Positions 23,601 to 64,000 of a DNA stretch of 64,000 nucleotides are shown here, in pieces. The position numbers were made by a program, and so were the translations under genes. The first letter of the stretch is position 1, and each line of letters opens with the position of its first letter. The stretch spans positions 992,001-1,056,000 of the forward strand of contig OZ176051.1 of the NCBI GenBank assembly GCA_964247055.1, read 5' to 3'. The notes beneath the pieces were generated by a model. It did not search any database and was not told where the DNA came from. It saw only the letters and a list, made by a program, of their open reading frames with translations. Source of the stretch: Paragordius varius (lineage: Eukaryota > Animalia > Nematomorpha).

Positions 23601-26600
23601 TCTGATTTTTACAGCGATACTTTAAAAATTAATGTATAAAACTAGTCGCATCAATACTCAAGTTAAACTTTGTCCTTAAAAATCGGATATTGGTCACCGG
23701 TGAACGAAATTATTTTTTATACATTCTCTTAGTAGGACTACATCAAAATATAGAGATAGTTTGACAAACTCTTTCATATCCGATTTTTACAACGATACTT
23801 TAAAAATTAATGTATAAAATTAGTCGCATCAATACTCAAGTTAAACTTTATCCTTAAAAATCGGATATTGGTCAACGGTGAACGAAACTATTTTTTATAC
23901 ATTCTCTTAGTAGCACTACATCAAAATATAGAGATAGTTTGACAAACTCTTTCATATCCGATTTTTACAACGATACTTCAAAAATTAATGTATAAAATTA
24001 GTCGCATCAATACTCAGGTTAAACTTTGTCCTTAAAAATCGGATATTGGTCAACGGTGAACGAAACTATTTTTTATTTATTCTCTTGAGATAGTTTGACA
24101 AACTCTTTCATATCCGATTTTTACAACGATACTTTAAAAATTAATGTATAAAACTAGTCGCATCAAAACTCAAGTTAAACTTTGTCCTTAAAAATCGGAT
24201 ATTGGTCACCGGTGAACGAGACTATTTTTTATAAATTCTCTTAGTAGGACTACATCAAAATATAGAGATAGTTTGACAAACTCTTTAATATCTGATTTTT
24301 ACAGCGATACTTTAAAAATTTATGTATAATTTAGCATACGACAATAAGCAAGTTAAACTTTGGCTTTAAAAATCGGATATTGGTCACCTGTGAACAAAAT
24401 TATTTATTTATACATTCTCTTAGTAAGACTACATCAAAATATAGAGATAGTTTCACAAACTCTTATATCCGATTTTTACAACGATACTTTAAAAATTAAT
24501 GTATAAAACTAGTCTAATCAAAACTCAAGTTAAACTTTGTCCTTAAAAATTGGATATTGGTCACCGGTGAACGAAATTATTTTTTATACATTCTCTTAGT
24601 AGGACTACATCAAAATATAGAGATAGTTTGACAAACTCTTTCATATCCGATTTTTACAACGATACTTTAAAAATTAATGTATAAAATTAGTCGCATCAAT
24701 ACTCAAGTTAAACTTGGTCCTTAAAAATCGGATATTGGTCAACGGTGAACGAAACTATTTTTTATACATTCCCTTAGTAGGACTACATCAAAATATAGAG
24801 ATAGTTTAACAAACTGTTTCATATCCGATTTTTACAACGATACTTTAAAAATTAATGTATAAAACTAGTCGCATCAAAACTCAAGTTAAACTTTGTCCTT
24901 AAAAATCGGATATTGGTCACCGGTGAACGAGACTATTTTTTATAAATTCTCTTAGTAGGACTACATCAAAATATATAGATAGTTTGACAAACTCTTTAAT
25001 ATCTGATTTTTACAGCGATACTTTAAAAATTAATGTATAATTTAGCATAGGACAATAAGCAAGTTAAACTTTGTCCTTTAAAATCGGGGATTGGTCGCCG
25101 GTAAAGAAAATTATATTTTATACATTCTCTTAGTAGGACTACATCAAAATATAGAGATATTTTGACAAACTCTTTAATATCTGATTTTTACAGCGATACT
25201 TTAAAAATTAATGTATAAAATTAGTCTCATCAATACTCAAGTTAAACTTTGTCCTTAAAAATCGGATATTGGTCAACGGTGAACGAAACTATTTTTTATA
25301 CATTCTCTTAGTAGCACTACATCAAAATATAGAGATAGTTTGACAAACTCTTTCATATCCGATTTTTACAACGATACTTTAAAAATTAATGTATAAAACT
25401 AGTTGCATCAATACTCAAGTTAAACTTTGTCCTTAAAAATCGGATATTGGTCACCGGAGAACGAAACTATTTTTTGTACATTCTCTTAGTAGGACTACAT
25501 CAAAATATAGAGATAGTTTGACAAACTCTTTCATATCCGATTTTTACAACGATACTTTAAAAATTAATGTATAAAATTAGTCGCATCAATACTCAAGTTA
25601 AACTTTGTCCTTAAAAATCGGATATTGGTCACCGGTGAACGAGACTATTTTTTATAAATTCTCTTAGTAGGACTACATCAAAATATATAGATAGTTTGAC
25701 AAACTCTTTAATATCTGATTTTTACAGCGATACTTTAAAAATTAATGTATTTAGCATAGGACAATAAGCAAGTTAAACTTTGTCCTTAAAAATCGGGGAT
25801 TGGTCGCCGGTAAAGAAAATTATATTTTATACATTCTCTTAGTAGGACTACATCAAAATATAGTGATAGTTTGGCAAACTGTTTCATATCCGATTTTTAC
25901 AACGATACTTTAAAAATTAATGTATAAAACTAGTCGCATCAATACTCAAGTTAAACTTTGTCCTTAAAAATCGGATATTGGTCACCGGTAAACGAAATTA
26001 TTTTTCATAAATTCTCTTAGTAAGACTACATCAATATATAGAGATATTTTGACAAACTCTTTAATATCTGATTTTTACAGCGATACTTTAAAAATTAATG
26101 TATAAAATTAGTCGCATCAATACTCAAGTTAAACTTTGTCCTTAAAAATCGGATATTGGTCAACGGTGAACGAAACTATTTTTTATACATTCTCTTAGTA
26201 GGACTACATCAAAATATAGAGATAGTTTGACAAACTCTTTATCCGATTTTTACAACGATACTTTAAAAATTAATGTATAAAATTAGTCGCATCAATACTC
26301 AAGTTAAACTATATCCTTAAAAATCGGATATTGGTCAACGGTGAACGAAACTATTTTTTATACATTCTCTTAGTAGCACTACATCAAAATATAGAGATAG
26401 TTTGACAAACTCTTTCATATCCGATTTTTACAACGATACTTTAAAAATTAATGTATAAAACTAGTTGCATCAATACTCAAGTTAAACTTTGTCCTTAAAA
26501 ATCGGATATTGGTCACCGGTGAACGAAACTATTTTTTGTACATTCTCTTAGTAGGACTACATCAAAATATAGAGATAGTTTGACAAACTCTTTCATATCC

Positions 26601-26668
26601 GATTTTTACAACGATACTTTAAAAATTAATGTATAAAATTAGTCGCATCAATACTCAAGTTAAACTTT

Positions 26669-27481
26669 GACTGATGTGAATTTAAGTCAGTAAGATAGTA
26701 AGACGGTAAGACATAAAGATAGTAAGACGGTAAGACAGTAAGATAGTAAGACGGTAAGACAGTAAGATAGTAAGACAGTAAGCATAAGACAGTAAGATAT
26801 TTGTATAAAAAACATACATTCGTGATAAGTCTGCTAATAGGAGACTTATCAAAATTTCAAAGTATTATAACTTGAAAAATATTGCATCTTTTTGAATTCT
26901 GTAAACTGGAGGATTGAAAGTCAGGTATCCTTTACAAATAATATATAGGGTTAAGTGAAAATGCGTAATTCTTTCGACACGAAACTGAGTTTACTAAACA
27001 CCTCCAAAAATTGTATAAATCTTAAAAAATATATAAAAAATCTTGGGTATTATAGAAGAAAATGGCATCTATACCATTGTTTCTTATTTGGTAAATATTT
27101 TTTTTATATTTTTACAGTTTTAACAATTTTTTTTAAAAAAATTGTACTTCATGGTTCTGACAACAATAAAAATAAATATAGCTAAATATTATTATAATAA
27201 ATTTGAATTTTGTATTCTAAAATCAGCTTTTAACCCGATAATAACCGTTTTCCCCTAAAATTTTACATGCAGAACGATATCAGATCCAGGGAAGTTTTGG
27301 TGGAATTACTTGAAAAGTAAATTATTAATAAATATATAGATTTCCAATATTATATTCTAGAAAATCCAACAGTTTAGTTATGCAAAAAGATCAATGAAAT
27401 TTATTGTTTAGTGAATATATAACAAAAGTTAATGATGGCCAGAACTTAAAACAGTTACAGAAGATGTTTACTAATATTAAA
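26669..27481 (+). repeat. Left inverted arm (813 bp)
   Basis: Reverse complement of 27643-28455. The only mismatches I saw were 26714/28410 and 27470-71/27653-54. Confidence 0.97.
26688..26797 (+). repeat. Subterminal 8-bp-period array (CA/TA/CG)GTAAGA, about 14 units
   Basis: CAGTAAGA-TAGTAAGA-CGGTAAGA cycles, starting 19 bp inside the terminus. Confidence 0.95.
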
Positions 27482-27655
27482 TATACGATTAAAAAGAAGT
27501 TGCAAAAAATGAAACAAACTGGAAACAAAAAGCCACCTATTTTTCTGGAATATGAAAAAAAATTATACTCATTACTTGAATATTCATCCAGTAGCGAAAT
27601 ACAAGGTCATAAAAATCAAGGCAATAATTTTGATACGTTTGGTTTAATATTATAA
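27267..27655 (+). pseudogene. Disrupted Myb/SANT-like DNA-binding protein gene (Harbinger ORF1-like), 3'-truncated
   Basis: ATG at 27267 and a putative GT-AG intron at 27317-27360 give MQNDIRSREVLVELLEKKSNSLVMQKDQ*NLLFSEYITKVNDGQNLKQLQKMFTNIKYTIKKKLQKMKQTGNKKPPIFLEYEKKLYSLLE. The pattern KQL.K.F.NIK...KKK...KQTG matches helix 3 and the TG tail of Myb_DNA-bind_5-type domains, and the TGA at 27395-97 sits where a conserved Trp is expected. Matched by eye; no HMM was run. Confidence 0.62.
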
Positions 27656-27857
27656 AACATCTTCTGTAACTGTTTTAAGTTCTGGCCATCATTAACTTTT
27701 GTTATATATTCACTAAACAATAAATTTCATTGATCTTTTTGCATAACTAAACTGTTGGATTTTCTAGAATATAATATTGGAAATCTATATATTTATTAAT
27801 AATTTACTTTTCAAGTAATTCCACCAAAACTTCCCTGGATCTGATATCGTTCTGCAT
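27655..27857 (-). pseudogene. Mirror copy of the 5' part of the Myb/SANT-like remnant
   Basis: The right arm duplicates 27267-27469 in reverse orientation, up to ...KQLQKMF. Confidence 0.55.
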
Positions 27858-28326
27858 GTAAAATTTTAGGGGAAAACGGTTATTATCGGGTTAAAAGCTG
27901 ATTTTAGAATACAAAATTCAAATTTATTATAATAATATTTAGCTATATTTATTTTTATTGTTGTCAGAACCATGAAGTACAATTTTTTTAAAAAAAATTG
28001 TTAAAACTGTAAAAATATAAAAAAAATATTTACCAAATAAGAAACAATGGTATAGATGCCATTTTCTTCTATAATACCCAAGATTTTTTATATATTTTTT
28101 AAGATTTATACAATTTTTGGAGGTGTTTAGTAAACTCAGTTTCGTGTCGAAAGAATTACGCATTTTCACTTAACCCTATATATTATTTGTAAAGGATACC
28201 TGACTTTCAATCCTCCAGTTTACAGAATTCAAAAAGATGCAATATTTTTCAAGTTATAATACTTTGAAATTTTGATAAGTCTCCTATTAGCAGACTTATC
28301 ACGAATGTATGTTTTTTATACAAATA

Positions 28327-28436
28327 TCTTACTGTCTTATGCTTACTGTCTTACTATCTTACTGTCTTACCGTCTTACTATCTTACTGTCTTACCGTCTT
28401 ACTATCTTTCTGTCTTACCGTCTTACTATCTTACTG
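28327..28436 (-). repeat. Mirror subterminal 8-bp-period array
   Basis: TCTTACTG/TCTTACTA/TCTTACCG cycles, the reverse complement of 26688-26797 with one difference. Confidence 0.95.
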
Positions 28437-29649
28437 ACTTAAATTCACATCAGTCTTTGTCTTTAAAAATCGGATATTGGTCAACGGTGAACGAAACTAT
28501 TTTTTATACATTCTCTTAGTAGGACTACATCAAAATATAGAGATGGTTTGACAAACTCTTTATCCGATTTTTACAACGATACTTTAAAAATTAATGTATA
28601 AAATTAGTCGCATCAATACTCAAGTTAAACTTTATCCTTAAAAATCGGATATTGGTCAACGGTGAACGAAACTATTTTTTATACATTCTCTTAGTAGCAC
28701 TACATCAAAATATAGAGATAGTTTGACAAACTCTTTCATATCCGATTTTTACAACGATACTTTAAAAATTAATGTATAAAACTAGTTGCATCAATACTCA
28801 AGTTAAACTTTGTCCTTAAAAATCGGATATTGGTCACCGGTGAACGAAACTATTTTTTGTACATTCTCTTAGTAGGACTACATCAAAATATAGAGATAGT
28901 TTGACAAACTCTTTCATATCCGATTTTTACAACGATACTTTAAAAATTAATGTATAAAATTAGTCGCATCAATACTCAAGTTAAACTTTATCCTTAAAAA
29001 TCGGATATTGGTCAACGGTGAACGAAACTATTTTTTATACATTCTCTTAGTAGGACTACATCAAAATATAGAGATAGTTTGACAAACTCTTTATCCGATT
29101 TTTACAACGATACTTTAAAAATTAATGTATAAAACTAGTTGCATCAATACTCAAGTTAAACTTTGTCCTTAAAAATCGGATATTGGTCACCGGTGAACGA
29201 AACTATTTTTTATACATTATCTTAGTAGGACTACATCAAAATATAGAGATAGTTTGACAAACTCTTTCATATCCGATTTTTACAACGATACTTTAAAAAT
29301 TAATGTATAAAATTAGTCGCATCAACTCAAGTTAAACTTTGTCCTTAAAAATCGGATATTGGTCAACGGTGAACAAAACTATTTTTTATACATTCTCTTA
29401 GTAGGACTACATTAAAATATAGAGATAGTTTGACAAACTCTTTATCCGATTTTTAAAACGATACTTTAAAAATTAATGTATAAAATTAGTCGCATCAATA
29501 CTCAAGTTAAACTTTGTCCTTAAAAATCGGATATTGGTCAACGATGAACGAAACTATTTTTTATACATTCTCTTAGTAGGACTACATCAAAATATAGAGA
29601 TAGTTTGACAAACTCTTTCATATCCGATTTTTACAACGATACTTTAAAA

Positions 29650-57289: not shown

Positions 57290-57499
57290 CTAAAAAATAA
57301 AAAAAATTGTAACATAATCTTTTCGTCCTTGTCGTAATCAGATCTTCTAAATTTCTGTTTTATAAGGCCTCTCCTTGATTACTATAAACCCTTATTCAAT
57401 TGTGGGCTAATGTAACGATCTCCATATTTTGCTGTTATAAATAATTAGTCCCAAAGAATCTATCCAACATTGAATATATTTAATTTTTTTATTTTTTAG

Positions 57500-58720
57500 A
57501 TGATTTGCGTATTATTCCCAGGAAGAATTACAAAGAGCCGGCCATCGAGTTATTATTTTCATACAAATATTAATATTATTTACTATTATATAACAAAATT
57601 TTTAAATGTCAAACATTAATTTTGAATTATATTTATATTCCCTTAAAAATAACATTAGTCTTTCTATTATCTGCCTATCTTATTTGATAATAACACCTGA
57701 TATAGTAAAAAGGCACAAATGGAACTAGATTTCAAAATATATATGGATTTATTTAGCCTATTATAATTTTTAATTTGATGACGAATTTATTTATGTTTAT
57801 TGTGTCCATCACTAATAATTATAGAAAAATTGGTAAATGATAGAAAATTATTTATGTTTAATAAAAATAATATAATATTAGATTTGTAAATTAATGTATT
57901 TTTAATTTGTTAATTATTGCACATTGCAAATTAGGTGCGACGTAACATTTGGATGAAAACATTCAATTTCTTTTAAAAAAATTATCACTTCTATATAAAC
58001 AAACTAAAAATTTAGCCAACAAGACATCAAAGATTCATGAATATAAGAGTTTTAACACAAAACCCGTCAAATGCTATTCACCTCTTGAATAAACGAAATA
58101 AAGAATAACATCATATGTTGGTTTGCTTTAGACATGATATCAAGAAGCGGGCTTAACACTTCGATTCAAATTGGGAAATCTAAATACCCAGACTAAATTT
58201 GATGTAGGTGTAAATTATTGAAGGAAACGGTCCCAAATTTAATTTATGTCTATCCTTATATAAATTAAATATATATGGCAAAATATCTAACTAAAATTTT
58301 TATTTGAAAAAAAAGTTCCGCGTTAAACTACTTCGACGCCATTTTTATTTTACAAAATTTTTGCAAAATATCGTCTTTATTTAATTTTAAGGGTAAAATT
58401 GAAACGAATTTTTATTTAAATTACTTCTAGCATTGATTGAAATGGAAAAAGCAGTTTATTTTGTCTTATTTTTCAATTTTACCATTGCAAGCATGTCTTG
58501 CCGAAATTTTTATTTCTCGGTTTTAGCTCAAAAAGTATTATCACGTATTTTTGAATAAAATTTTTTATATATTTTAGTTTATTAATCTTATATAAGTGCA
58601 CATGGTTTCGATTCCTTCCATATTTTAAATAGGCCTGGGGTATTTAAGACCCCAATTTGAATCGAAGGACAAAAATGAATGTGTTGCATCGTGTTAAAAA
58701 GATTGAAAGATTAGTAAATT
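57500..58720 (+). pseudogene. Inverted paralog of the exon-like blocks, interrupted by a longer intervening segment and the MITE
   Basis: 57500-57620 and 58030-58152 (resuming at 58698) align at roughly 80% by eye to the reverse complement of 60452-60573 and 60237-60386. The sequence between the blocks is non-homologous. Confidence 0.3.
58157..58693. mobile_element. TTAA-flanked MITE-like insertion (piggyBac-like), unit 1
   Basis: TTAA-CAC at the left end and GTG-TTAA at the right end. A 17-bp perfect inverted repeat (CTTCGATTCAAATTGGG, 58159-75 / 58651-67) extends imperfectly to about 35 bp. Homology to the inverted paralog stops at the left TTAA and resumes after the right TTAA. Confidence 0.65.
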
Positions 58721-60029
58721 ATTGCCATATGAAGATTCTCGTATTTTAAATTTCAATTTACCATCCATATAATAAACATTCATTAACAATATAATTGGAA
58801 GCAAATAAAATATAAAAAAATACGTGTTATTCCCTCACATCGTATTGTTGGACCCATGGGGCGATCTTTTTCTAAAATAAAAAAATGTACCACATTGCAC
58901 AAATAAAAGATTGATTTTTAATAAAATATATATATCATCATGTATGTCTTTTTGTATTAGGCAATAAAGTGACCACTTTTATGGTATTAACCTCATACGA
59001 AAATATAATTTATGAATAATTTACATTTTTAGGGGAAAATAAATTTTCCAAAATATATCATTTATGTCATAAACTATAACAAGAATTTTTTGATAAAAAT
59101 TAAATGTTTAGATTGGTCTCCCACAATAACCGAGACTGCGCTAAGAAATATTATTATATGTTAAATTGTATAAAAAAGATTATTTCTAAATAAAACTTTG
59201 CCCACAATTTGTATCATATGAGATTTATTATTGTAGTGATTATAAGGTAGTTAGACGTTTTTTAATAAATTCAAAATTTATTAATACAGAAGGTGGATTC
59301 ATTATTAAATGAATTTTAATGTGCGAAAAGTCTAGGAAATTACTGAATGCATGTTCTTATATTAAAATGAAAATGTAACAAAACCTATATAATTCAATTT
59401 TTTCCCAGGATTTTTACACAATGTCTTTTCGATGATACTCTCAACGAATTTTGCGAATTCATCCGTGAACCTCGCTCTATATTTTGATTTTATTATACCA
59501 ATAAATCAAAAATTGACATCTATAATAGTGAAACATGGTTGTCAATTTAAGCAAGTTTATGTGCAAACATATGAATATATAAAATATCTGGTGAAATGAA
59601 TTAGATTTTGCTAAATGCTGTTAAACTTCATTTTTTGAAATACTATACTTTGGTAAGCCATATAAAAACACACGGCCGGCCAATTTTAGTATGTGAACCC
59701 TTGTTTGCCGACTCCTGATGTAAACTATTATATTGAGCCATCAACAAAAATAAGATTTAATTATCCTCCATGTTGTAAATATATACAGGTGTGTTGGTTC
59801 ATAAAAAGCGAAATGTTAATTGCTTTGAAAATATGATATTGGCGGACGCTGCAATAACATATAAACCCTGTAATTTCAAACAGGTCAATGTCACTAAATG
59901 AATGAGAACACAATAGACCCAAAAAATTAAAGCCTATAATAACAGGAACAAAAGGAGGCTATAAAAATGTTAAAAGCAAACATTATCCCTATTCTAAACA
60001 TAAACTTATATCCCTAGTTTACAACTTAC

Positions 60030-60573
60030 ATTGTTGCATATTTCACTCAGCTATTTATCGAATTTCACTTCATTTCATATCATACAATAACTTTAATACG
60101 ATTAAATAATCATCTATTATTGATCTTTTAACAAAAGAAATTTTTTGATATTCTTGGTCATATCTTAGGCCACGTCGAGATAAATTCGCCAACTTATATA
60201 CAATGATCTTAACTACTTCGGGCACACTGTTATATGATCTACTAATTTTTCAATATTTTTACCTCGCTTCTTGTTAGTTATTATGTCTAAAGCAAACCAT
60301 TATGATCTTATTCTTTATCTTGTTAATTAAGAGATGAATAGTATTTGACCGGTTTATTCTTAAAACTCTTATATTCATGAACCTTTAGGGCAGTGATGAT
60401 CTATATACCATTTATATCTGTTTTTAATCATATATTCATGTTTTAACTCACCATTAATGTTTGGCTTTTATAAATTATGATATATTTTAAATAAAATTAA
60501 TATTTGTATAAGAATAATAACTCGTTAATGGCGGGCTCCTTGTAATTTTTCGAGGAAATAATACGCAAATTAC
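60030..60573 (-). pseudogene. Exon-like blocks of an unidentified decayed gene (unit 1)
   Basis: On the minus strand: a polypyrimidine acceptor TTCTTTAG, a 122-bp block (60573-60452), donor GTGAGT, a second block, then donor GTAAGT at 60029. Indels versus unit 2 within the second block are 3, 3, 6 and 9 bp. Stops occur in every frame and the product is unknown. Confidence 0.35.
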
Positions 60574-61439
60574 CTAAAGAATAAAAAAAATTGTAACATA
60601 ATCTTTTCGTCCTTGTCGTGGATTTATCAGATCTTCGAAATTTCTGTTTTATAAGGCCTCTCCTTGATTACTAGAAACCCTTATTCAATTGTAGACTAAT
60701 GCAACGATCTCCATATTTTGCTGTTATAAATAATTAGTCCCAAAGAATCTATCCAACATTGAATATATTTAATTTTTTTATTTTTTAGATGATTTGCGTA
60801 TTATTCCCAGGAAGAATTACAAGGAGCCGGCCATCGAGTTATTATTCTTATACAAATATTAATATTATTTACTATTTTATGACTTAATTTTTAAATGCCA
60901 AACATTAATGAAATTTAATTTATATTCTATTAAAAATAACATTAATCTTTTTATTATCTTCCTATCTTGTTTGATAATTACACCTGATATAGTAAAAAAC
61001 ACAAATAGAAAATAGATTTCAATATATATTTATGGATTTATTTGGCCCATCATAATTTTCTAAATTAGTGACGAATTTAGATTATGTTTACTCTGTCCAT
61101 CACTAATAATTATAGAAAAATTGGTAGATAGAAAATTATTTATGTTTAATAAAAATAATATAATATTTATTTGTAAATTAATGTATTTATAATTTGTTAA
61201 TTATTGCACATTGCAAATTAGGTGCGACGTAACACTTGGATGAAAACATTCATTTTCTTTTAAAAAAATTATCACTTCTATATAAACAAACAATTTAGCC
61301 AACAAGACATCAAAGGTTCATGAATATAAAAGTTTTAACACTAAACCCGTCAAATGCTATTCACCTCTTGAATAAACGAAATAAAGAATAACATCATATG
61401 TTGGTTTGCTTTAGACATGATATCAAGAAGCGGGCTTAA

Positions 61440-61971
61440 CACTTTGATTCAAATTGGGTAATCCAAATACCCAGACTAAATTTATGTAGGTGTAAATTAT
61501 TGAAGGAAACGGTCCCAAATTAAATTTATGTCTATCCTTATATAAATTAAATATATATGGCCAAATATCTAACTAAAATTTTTATTTGAAAAAAAAGTTC
61601 CGCGTTAAACTACTTCGACGCCATTTTTATTTTACAAAATTTTTGCAAAATATCGTCTTTATTTTAAGGGTAAAATTGAAGCGAATTTTTATTTAAATTA
61701 CTTCTAGCATTGATTGAAATGGAAAAAGCAGTTTATTTTGTCTAATTTTTCAATTTTCCATTGCAAGCATGTCTTGACGAAATTTTTATTTCTCGGTTTT
61801 AGCTCAAAATAAGTAATATCACGTATTTTTGAATAAAATTTTTTATATATTTTAGTTTATTAATCTTATATAAGTGCACATGGTTTCGATTCCTTCCATA
61901 TTTTAAATAGGCCTGGGGTATTTAAGACCCCAATTTGAATCGAAGGACAAAAATGAATGTGTTGCATCGTG
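61440..61971. mobile_element. TTAA-flanked MITE-like insertion, unit 2 copy
   Basis: Equivalent position in unit 2, with TTAA at 61436-39 and 61972-75. Confidence 0.62.
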
Positions 61972-63330
61972 TTAAAAAGATTGAAAGATTAGTGAATTAT
62001 TGCCATATGAAGATTCTCGTATTTTAAATTTCAATTTACCATCCATATAATAAACATTCATTAACAATATAATTGGAAGCAAATAAAATATAAAAAATAC
62101 GTGTTATTCCCTCACATCGTATTGTTGGACCCATGGGGCGATCTTTTTCTAAAATAAAAAAAATGTATATAATATTATTGATACCCCATTGCACAAATAA
62201 AAGATTGATTTTTAATAAAATATATATATCATCATGTATGTCCTTTTGTATTAGGCAATAAAGTGACCACTTTTATGGTATTAACCTTATACGAAAATAT
62301 AATTTATGAATAATTTACATTTTTAGGGGAAAATAAATTTTCCAAAATATATCATTTATGTCATAAACTATAACAAGAATTTTTTGATAAAAATTAAATG
62401 TTTAGATTGGTCTCCCACAATAACCGAGACTGCGCTAAGAAATATTATTATATGTAAAATTGTATAAAAAAGATTATTTCTAAATAAAACTTTGCCCACA
62501 ATTTGTATCATATGAGATTTATTATTGTAGTGATTATAAGGTAGTTAGACGTTTTTTAATAAATTCAAAATTTATTAATACAGAAGGTGGATTCATTATT
62601 AAATGAATTTTAATGTGCGGAAAGTCTAGGAAATTACTGAATGCATGTTCTTATATTAAAATGAAAATGTAACATAACCTATATAATTCAATTATTTCCC
62701 AGGATTTTTACACAATGTCTTTTCGATGATACTCTCAACGAATTTTGCGAATTTTTATCCGTGAACCTCGCTCTATATTTTGATTTTATTATACCAATAA
62801 ATCAAAAATTGACATCTATAATAGTGAAACATGGTTGTCAATTTAAGCAAGTTTATGTGCAAACATATGAATATATAAAATATCTGGTGAAATGAATTAG
62901 ATTTTGCTAAATGCTGTTAAACTTCATTTTTTGAAATACTATACTTTGGTAAGCCATATAAAAACACACGGCCGGCCAATTTTAGTATGTGAACCCTTGT
63001 TTGCCGACTCCTGATGTAAACTATTATATTGAGCCATCAACAAAAATAAGATTTAATTTTTATCCTCCATGTATTGTTAATATATACAGGTGTGTTGGTT
63101 CATAAAAAGCGAAATGTTAATTGCTTTGAAAAAATTATATTGGTGGACGCTGCAATAACATAAAAACCCTGTAATTTCAAACAGGTCAATGTCACTAAAT
63201 GAATGAGAACACAATAGACCCAAAAAATTAAAGCCTATAATAACAGGAACAAAAGGAGGCTATAAAAATGTTAAAAGCAAACATTATCCCTATTCTCAAC
63301 ATAAACTTATATCCCTAGTTTACAACTTAC

Positions 63331-63857
63331 ATTGTTGCATATTTCACTCAGCTATTTATCGAATTTCACTTCATTTCATTCCATACAATACGATTAAATA
63401 ATCATCTATTATTGATCTTTTAACAAAAGTAATTTTTTGATATTCTTGGTCATATCTTAGGCCATAAATTTCCGCCAACTTATATACAATTTTGATCTTA
63501 ACTACTTCGGGCGCACTGTTATATGATCTACTAATTTTTCAATATTTTTACCTCGCTTCTTGTTAGTTATTATGTCTAAAGGAAACCATTATGAGCTTAT
63601 TCTTTATGTTAATTAAGAGATGAATAGTATTTGACCGGTTTATTCTTAAAACTCTTATATTCATGAACCTTTAGGGCAGTGATGATCTATACCATTTATA
63701 TCTGTTTTTAATCATATATTCATGTTTTAACTCACCATTAATGTTTGGCTTTTATAAATTATGTTATATTTTAAATAAAATTAATATTTGTATAAGAATA
63801 ATAACTCGTTAATGGCGGGCTCCTTGTAATTTTTCGAGGAAATAATACGCAAATTAC
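63331..63857 (-). pseudogene. Exon-like blocks, unit 2 copy
   Basis: Same splice-like signals at the equivalent positions. Confidence 0.33.
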
Positions 63858-64000
63858 CTAAAGAATAAAAAAAATTGTAACATAATCTTTTCGTCCTTGT
63901 CGTGGATTTATCAGATCTTCGAAATTTCTGTTTTATAAGGCCTCTCCTTGATTACTATGAACCCTTATTCAATTGTAGACTAATGCAACGATCTCCATAT

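Follow-up and report, generated by a model that had tools for sequence, protein, structure and literature searches.

How did a near-perfect palindrome of almost 1.8 kb come to stand alone in a satellite array of the nematomorph Paragordius varius, and to what kind of mobile element does it belong? The window analyzed here is a stretch of 64,000 nucleotides (assembly GCA_964247055.1, contig OZ176051.1, positions 992,001 to 1,056,000). The evidence presented below makes it highly probable that the palindrome is a non-autonomous, rearranged copy of a PIF/Harbinger DNA transposon, in which an inverted copy of the side carrying a Myb/SANT-like gene (the M side) has replaced the side carrying the transposase gene (the T side); the most likely origin is gap repair.

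Structure of the Palindrome and Its Satellite Setting

A repeat search delimits a palindrome of 1787 bp at 26669–28455 (positions given without a prefix are those of the window), which consists of a left arm (26669–27481, forward strand), a 161-bp spacer (27482–27642, forward strand), and a right arm (27643–28455, reverse strand) that is the left arm inverted. The arms are 813 bp long and have three mismatches, which direct comparison places at 26714/28410 and at the adjacent positions 27470–27471/27653–27654; the latter two fall in the repair junction described below, which leaves a single mismatch in the ~801 bp of arm that were copied. The palindrome has the termini G...C, with TTT on either side (26666–26668 and 28456–28458). 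It is surrounded by a 178-bp satellite (TRF period 178) that runs in a single orientation through 1–57289, and the orientation and phase of the array to the left of the insertion (1–26668, forward strand) are unchanged in the array to the right (28456–57289, forward strand), so that the monomer interrupted by the palindrome keeps its phase across it. In a k-mer scan the sole non-satellite stretch within 1–57289 is 26670–28461, and the empty site, AAAC-TTT-GTCC, is found 226 times in the window. The arms, spacer, ends, and TTT duplication, as well as the lone position of the insertion in 57 kb of same-orientation satellite, are thus as described in the original prediction, an earlier reading of this DNA. 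The possibility that the palindrome marks a boundary between satellite subtypes was rejected, the variants being intermixed on both sides. When the palindrome is folded as a single strand with RNA parameters, 816 of the 845 predicted pairs are in the foldback register (minimum free energy −1321 kcal/mol), which is consistent with the hairpin-forming capacity of about 0.8 kb that had been attributed to it.

The Transposon Family

It had been proposed that the genome be searched with the termini and the spacer and that arms and target site duplications (TSDs) be tabulated. The genome searched is the window's own assembly (110.6 Mb in 44 contigs); with the left arm plus spacer as query it yields a family of at least 16 copies that are 96–99% identical to the query. 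All 16 copies have the termini GACTGATGTG...CACATCAGTC (GACTG...CAGTC in 16/16), and 15 of them are flanked by a perfect 3-bp A/T-rich TSD, which is ATA in four copies, TTT, TTA, TAA, and AAA in two copies each, and CTA, ATT, and TAT in one copy each. The reconstructed empty sites suggest a weakly palindromic extended target, aRAY|WWW|RTYt, in which 7 of the 15 sites have C at −1 of the TSD and 7 have G at +1, in a surrounding genome region of about 27% G+C. A TSD of 5 bp (CTTTG) in the window copy, which would have pointed to a Transib-like element, was rejected because the G and C are constant in the other copies while the flanks vary. The family is young, its pairwise divergence being about 1% and its tree star-like; the view of the palindrome as a DNA transposon that is young, foldback in shape, and flanked by a 3-bp TSD is upheld.

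Near each end are subterminal tandem units of 8 bp, TAAGAYRG, about 14 in number with a 24-bp higher order, at 26683–26800 (forward strand; mirror 28324–28441); they are confined to the outer ~130 bp of the arm, and their number differs between copies in steps of 8 or 24 bp. According to a passage in PMC13668399 that cites Sinzelle 2008, the Myb-like partner binds subterminal repeats in the Harbinger systems studied, and by analogy the TAAGAYRG repeats are likely to be binding sites of the Myb-like protein considered below. The terminal inverted repeat (TIR) shared by the family occupies 26669–27334 of the left arm (forward strand; element 1–666). The T-side and M-side references agree only as far as T684/M701, and in copies without a 154-bp deletion (M670–822) the family TIR is about 685–700 bp in length (~690 bp). 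The 813-bp arms had been taken as a family trait; as judged from these comparisons, they are not the family TIR and consist instead of TIR plus Myb-side internal sequence, and the window palindrome, whose junction occurs nowhere else in the genome, is a one-off.

Superfamily Assignment

The window copy has no transposase and is non-autonomous. A sibling copy with the same ends, C6:3942950–3946334, encodes a 334-aa transposase (open reading frame (ORF) at C6:3943730–3944734) that matches PF13359 (DDE_Tnp_4) over the whole profile with an E-value of 4.7e-34 and PF04827 (Plant_tran) at 1e-7, and in which residues D135, D210, and E246 are present. This is the only intact transposase ORF in the family, and it is located in a palindrome of two T sides with 1448-bp arms, the left terminus of which is 3 bp short (GA-ATGTG). 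In at least seven copies the T side lies next to the same TIR, and it is therefore native to the family, rather than a nested insertion. The affiliation with Harbinger that had been suggested from the window alone thus gains a transposase.

The second gene is represented in the window copy by a Myb/SANT-like remnant at 27267–27655 (forward strand), with a candidate exon 1 at 27267–27316, inside the TIR, and an exon 2 open frame at 27361–27655; the donor, AA|GTAAAT, and the acceptor, at 27360, are boundaries read from the sequence. The first ~215 bp of the exon 2 frame are mirrored on the minus strand of the right arm. A TGA private to the window copy occupies 27395–27397 (forward strand; mirror 27727–27729), where the Myb-like domain otherwise has its invariant Trp codon. 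When the genome was searched in six frames with PF13873 (Myb_DNA-bind_5), ORFs were found convergent to four other Harbinger transposase loci (C4:12609718–12614110, C8:1387416–1389347, C8:4543147–4545064, and C10:1721221–1723159); at these loci the transposase is on one strand and the PF13873-like ORF on the other, 1–3.4 kb downstream. In BLASTP the M-side frame matches the Myb-like partner of the closest transposase relative at 4.9e-14 and an ORF above the PF13873 cut-off at 6.6e-8. The alignment of Myb-like ORFs preserves the invariant Trp and the motif QL.K...NIK..IKKK...QTG, and five of the six aligned ORFs match PF13873; in the ESM atlas the M-side frame stands at 0.91 to PF13873 clusters. 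Homology to PF13873 proteins that lie beside Harbinger transposases thus identifies the M-side frame as Myb/SANT-like.

Against Pfam, the M-side frame gives MADF at E 0.0013 (19.5 bits, below the cut-off of 22), and neither the 83-aa ORF of the window nor the 103-aa ORF of the sibling has a Myb match. A HMMER search of 1.84 billion representatives returned one match, an 1870-aa low-complexity protein, which was rejected as spurious (no BLASTP alignment and nonsense Pfam matches). An AlphaFold model made without an alignment has a pLDDT of 62; in a Foldseek comparison with the Protein Data Bank it retrieved nothing at E ≤ 0.001, and a profile of the six Myb-like ORFs had no match among the sequences of that database. 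The closest transposase relative (L038) has no TIRs within its 3.8 kb.

The combination of a 3-bp TSD, a DDE_Tnp_4 transposase, and a Myb/SANT-like second gene places the family, on sequence grounds, in PIF/Harbinger. The earlier description of the palindrome as carrying Myb/SANT cargo holds for the Myb/SANT homology, but not for the word cargo, since the frame is what truncation has left of the second gene of the element itself, with a stop in the place of the invariant Trp. Because that gene is truncated and contains a stop codon, the window copy encodes nothing. In the 6.7 kb past the end of the satellite (57290–64000), no ORF of ≥80 aa is present.

Copy Structures and the Repair Junction

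Every copy was tiled on M-side and T-side references, and from these tilings the canonical element can be reconstructed as one in which the Myb/SANT-like gene is directed inward from the M side and the DDE_Tnp_4 transposase gene is directed inward from the T side. The two sides are joined in three copies (C2:4.92M, C8:3.97M, and C9:2.67M), which have three different internal deletions and both genes directed inward. In 7 of the 16 copies, one side is combined with a bare or truncated TIR, and 6 of the 16 are same-end palindromes, all with different breakpoints. Four of these are M/M palindromes (the window copy, C6:1.12M, C6:8.28M, and C4:2.33M), one is the T/T palindrome with the transposase (C6:3.94M), and one, C3:7.37M, is a palindrome of a previously deleted M+T element. 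The left TIR of C3:7.37M also contains a fragment of a non-LTR retrotransposon (RVT_1, E 1.2e-40), inserted at about element position 148 (C3:7374548–7376064).

The window copy tiles as M 1–669 and 823–1133 followed by the reverse complement of M 972–823 and 669–1; in the numbering of the element, the Myb-side end 1–974 is joined to an inverted copy of itself, approximately 1–801. Other copies match element 1–974 unbroken, and by this comparison the 161-bp spacer extends the left arm colinearly along the canonical Myb-side sequence. An origin of the palindrome by nested head-to-head insertion was rejected because internal termini are absent.

At the joint (27643–27657), 15 nt pair in inverted orientation with 27467–27481 at 14 of 15 positions, the sequence shared by the forward and inverted M sides being TTTAATATTATTAAA versus the reverse complement of TTTACTAATATTAAA. 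When all forward/reverse pairs of 15-mers in the 942-bp unique M side are compared (n = 861,184), the joint is the only non-self pair with ≥14 matches, and the best available inverted homology was therefore used. Both arms carry the scar of the 154-bp deletion (27334–27335; mirror 27789–27790) and the private substitutions that include the TGA. Within the TIR core the arms differ from one another at 0 of 471 positions, as against 0.4–1.7% from any other copy. Since the 154-bp deletion and the private stop codon are in both arms, one arm was copied from the other, or both from one template end, late in the history of the family.

The state of the 154-bp deletion varies among the palindromes and is identical in both arms of each, and this, together with the differing breakpoints, means that several independent palindrome events are needed. 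The existence of four M/M palindromes, two of which have inverted-arm inner breakpoints just 18 bp apart (M972 in the window copy and M954 in C6:8.28M), might suggest instead that the window palindrome was not formed de novo but descends from an older and larger M/M palindrome by asymmetric central deletions, and central deletions involving microhomology are a known fate of long palindromes. Such descent is nevertheless distinctly unlikely. The 154-bp deletion is in both arms of the window copy and of C6:8.28M but in neither arm of C4:2.33M; C6:1.12M has yet another boundary (M812); and the window copy is not derivable from C6:8.28M by deletion, because its right arm extends further in. At least two to three separate foldback events would still be required for the M/M copies, in addition to those for the T/T and the complex copy, and the star-like tree has no shared derived variants uniting the M/M copies.

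Proposed Origin

Repair of a double-strand gap after excision is the most likely origin of the window palindrome, as suggested by the scar at the joint. Excision would leave a double-strand gap, for which a sister copy would serve as template in synthesis-dependent strand annealing. A nascent end that had copied the TIR could then invade again, now inverted, at the identical TIR of the other end and proceed into the wrong side, with the result that both broken ends would copy the same template end; it is the long identical TIRs that would permit such misoriented invasion. Having the same sequence, the two new strands would be able to pair only at short inverted homologies, would anneal at the best of these, and would be trimmed and sealed at the microhomology. 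A TIR of ~690 bp should make mis-invasion frequent, and this would explain 6 same-end products among 16 copies. The palindrome may have landed at the AAAC|TTT|GTCC site in the satellite monomer, or may have been remodelled there. [quoted passage not shown] Because it has two intact termini in which the TAAGAYRG blocks are kept, the window copy could be mobilizable in trans.

Several points weigh against this reading. No full-length element with both genes intact is present in the assembly, the canonical structure being a reconstruction from deletion derivatives. The pathway is read from the scar, and intrastrand snap-back or template switching at a replication fork would employ this microhomology as well. 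The near-identity of the arms need not reflect recency, since it could also be maintained by gene conversion inside the palindrome. Finally, in the short Logan contigs of four sequencing runs compared in detail over 26300–28800 (X1, X2, X5, and X7), none bridges the inner joint or either satellite junction, a result that neither confirms nor refutes the structure, and at 27385 and 27397–27398 these contigs have only the majority letters of the other copies (G at 27397–27398). With respect to snap-back, it should be noted that in its simple form this would mirror the flank; a mirrored flank is absent at the window copy and present at another palindrome, C3:12.52M, described below.

The sequencing runs were available as such short contigs, which drop rare variants. 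In eight runs with five organism labels, 59–72% of the sampled words of the stretch are present, and in the four runs compared in detail both the satellite and the transposon family are found. The loose contig ends at 27657 continue as canonical M side, and those at 28455–28457 continue into other copies. A freshwater metagenome contains a small share of the satellite and transposon family sequence. In run X5 there is a copy end with a flank that is missing from the assembly, which hints weakly at further insertion sites in other samples.

The lack of the internal junction, the satellite junctions, and the private letters from the contigs of the four runs would also fit an artefact of assembly or amplification, in which a chimeric fold-back read produced the inverted arm, and strand-displacing polymerases are known to generate fold-back chimeras with microhomology. 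An artefact is nonetheless highly improbable. A chimera would mirror the flank, whereas here the satellite continues in orientation and phase, the terminus is exact, and the 3-bp TSD is on both sides; moreover, five sibling copies elsewhere show analogous yet different structures with proper TSDs, and the window copy carries private substitutions.

Other Palindromes in the Genome

Inverted structures are also found beyond the 16 copies. A 5.2-kb palindrome at C3:12521837–12527077 has 2414-bp arms with 99.05% identity, and its center is inside an 1116-bp copy of the Harbinger family of the window; on either side the mirroring takes in about 2 kb of host flank, and the flanks of the copy, TTA/TAA, are mirror images and not a TSD. 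A sister family (C4:2901887–2904699 and C5:11098249–11100678), 75% identical to element 129–393, has the termini GACCCATGTTCGGG (also given as GACCCATGTTCGGGTAAG), a TTT TSD, and 14-bp subterminal repeats, TCCTTATGCTTAMR; it is nearly all palindromic over 2.4–2.8 kb, with about 20 matches in inverted pairs. More distant Harbinger transposase loci also occur in inverted pairs, for example C1:9052140–9057885, C6:3424228–3424973, L050, and L051, the first being a palindrome of ~5.7 kb with a 186-bp center, and there are roughly ten inverted pairs among the Harbinger transposase matches of the genome.

The 6 palindromes among 16 copies, the sister family, the other Harbinger families (~5.7 kb and smaller), and the one mirrored 2-kb flank raise the possibility, which we regard as unlikely, that the conversion of Harbinger elements into same-end palindromes is regular in this genome and not accidental. 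If true, this could mean a lineage-specific repair habit, homology-guided fold-back priming at long TIRs, that builds long TIRs stepwise; alternatively, the palindromes could be hairpin loci retained because they silence their own family.

A silencing role can be considered for the window copy itself. Mu killer of maize, a MULE derivative, is a natural inverted duplication of one transposon end with a demonstrated hairpin transcript and silencing, and the window copy resembles it, in structure alone, in that one end of an autonomous transposon has naturally been duplicated in inverted orientation. By analogy, read-through of the window copy would produce a double-stranded RNA of ~800 bp (TIR plus the 5' part of the Myb-like gene) that could supply small RNAs for silencing the whole family. 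The near-perfect 813-bp inverted duplication supplies the structural prerequisite, and the survival of only rearranged copies and a single intact transposase ORF is as expected of a silenced family. However, no RNA run contains the stretch, the copy is buried far inside a satellite array in which no promoter is evident beyond the element itself, and it is not singled out among the six same-end palindromes of the family; we therefore consider this role very unlikely.

Comparison with Known Systems

The family shares with other PIF/Harbinger elements (Harbinger3_DR, PIF, and Ping/mPing) a 3-bp A/T-rich TSD, a DDE_Tnp_4 transposase, a separate Myb/SANT-like gene, subterminal repeats, a weakly palindromic extended target, and non-autonomous deletion derivatives. 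It differs from them in its TIR of ~690 bp, as compared with the tens of bp that are typical, although short TIRs are not a defining feature; in TSDs that extend beyond TTA/TAA (TTT, AAA, ATA, CTA, and ATT); and in the occurrence of same-end palindromes as more than one-third of the copies.

Close parallels to the window copy are found among MITEs. Long-TIR PIF/Harbinger-related MITEs, including CbmPIF1a, and whole-element hairpins in several superfamilies have been described (PMC3814204). In the template-switch MITEs of that study (the Goblin/Ozma model; CbmPIF1a, Joey, Hairpin, and PAL), as in the window copy, one parent end stands, inverted, where the other should be, and the junction is at an inverted microhomology. 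The product here is a single 1.8-kb copy and not an amplified MITE family, and the parent sides, several independent sibling products, and an exact 14/15-nt microhomology occur together in a single genome. Spy elements, of the PHIS group, have TIRs of 9 to 1,474 bp, the mechanism of which is called unclear (PMC4122938); they resemble the present family in belonging to a related DDE transposase group and in their variable TIR length. Unlike this family, with its varied 3-bp TSDs and Myb-like second gene, Spy elements have no TSD, insert at AAA|TTT, and have a single ORF, and membership in Spy was rejected on the basis of the varied TSDs and the two genes.

The foldback elements FB of Drosophila and Galileo (P superfamily; PMC3688188) also have long and variable inverted arms with outer tandem subrepeats, are hairpin-capable, and can seed rearrangements, for which the 5.2-kb palindrome at C3:12.52M may be compared. 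They belong to another superfamily, with TSDs of 7–9 bp as opposed to 3 bp, and in the present family the subrepeats are restricted to the outer ~130 bp. Membership in FB/Galileo, in which the transposase is of the THAP/P or MULE type and the arms are mostly subrepeats, was rejected in view of the 3-bp TSD, the DDE_Tnp_4 transposase, and the limited subrepeats. CACTA/EnSpm elements, with CACTA/CACTG termini and a Tnp2-type transposase, likewise have a 3-bp TSD and subterminal repeats, but the GACTG...CAGTC termini and the DDE_Tnp_4 transposase exclude the family from that group.

A search of the full-text literature for Harbinger elements with foldback structure or long TIRs, the scope of which did not extend to transposon libraries, found no described family like this one. 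The claim in the original prediction that a Harbinger-like foldback would be of an undescribed kind is nevertheless too strong, in view of the CbmPIF1a-type MITEs (PMC3814204) and the Spy TIRs of up to 1,474 bp (PMC4122938). Long-TIR and foldback-like PIF/Harbinger derivatives, and the repair model, are already published; what is unusual here is the long TIR and the clarity of the repair scar.

Implications

Apart from its bearing on the repair model and on annotation, the window copy is an ordinary dead transposon copy in a satellite. For annotation it carries a caution against equating the arms of one palindromic copy with the TIR of its family. For the family, the copy structures indicate a repeated extension of TIRs by duplication of the same end, and how PHIS-group elements acquire very long TIRs and a foldback form is still described as unclear (PMC4122938). 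Within a single genome, this young family displays the parent sides together with simple deletion derivatives and several same-end palindromes of independent origin, and the joint of the window copy, located at the single best inverted microhomology, constitutes clean natural evidence for the template-switch/annealing model that was derived from mosquito MITEs (PMC3814204).

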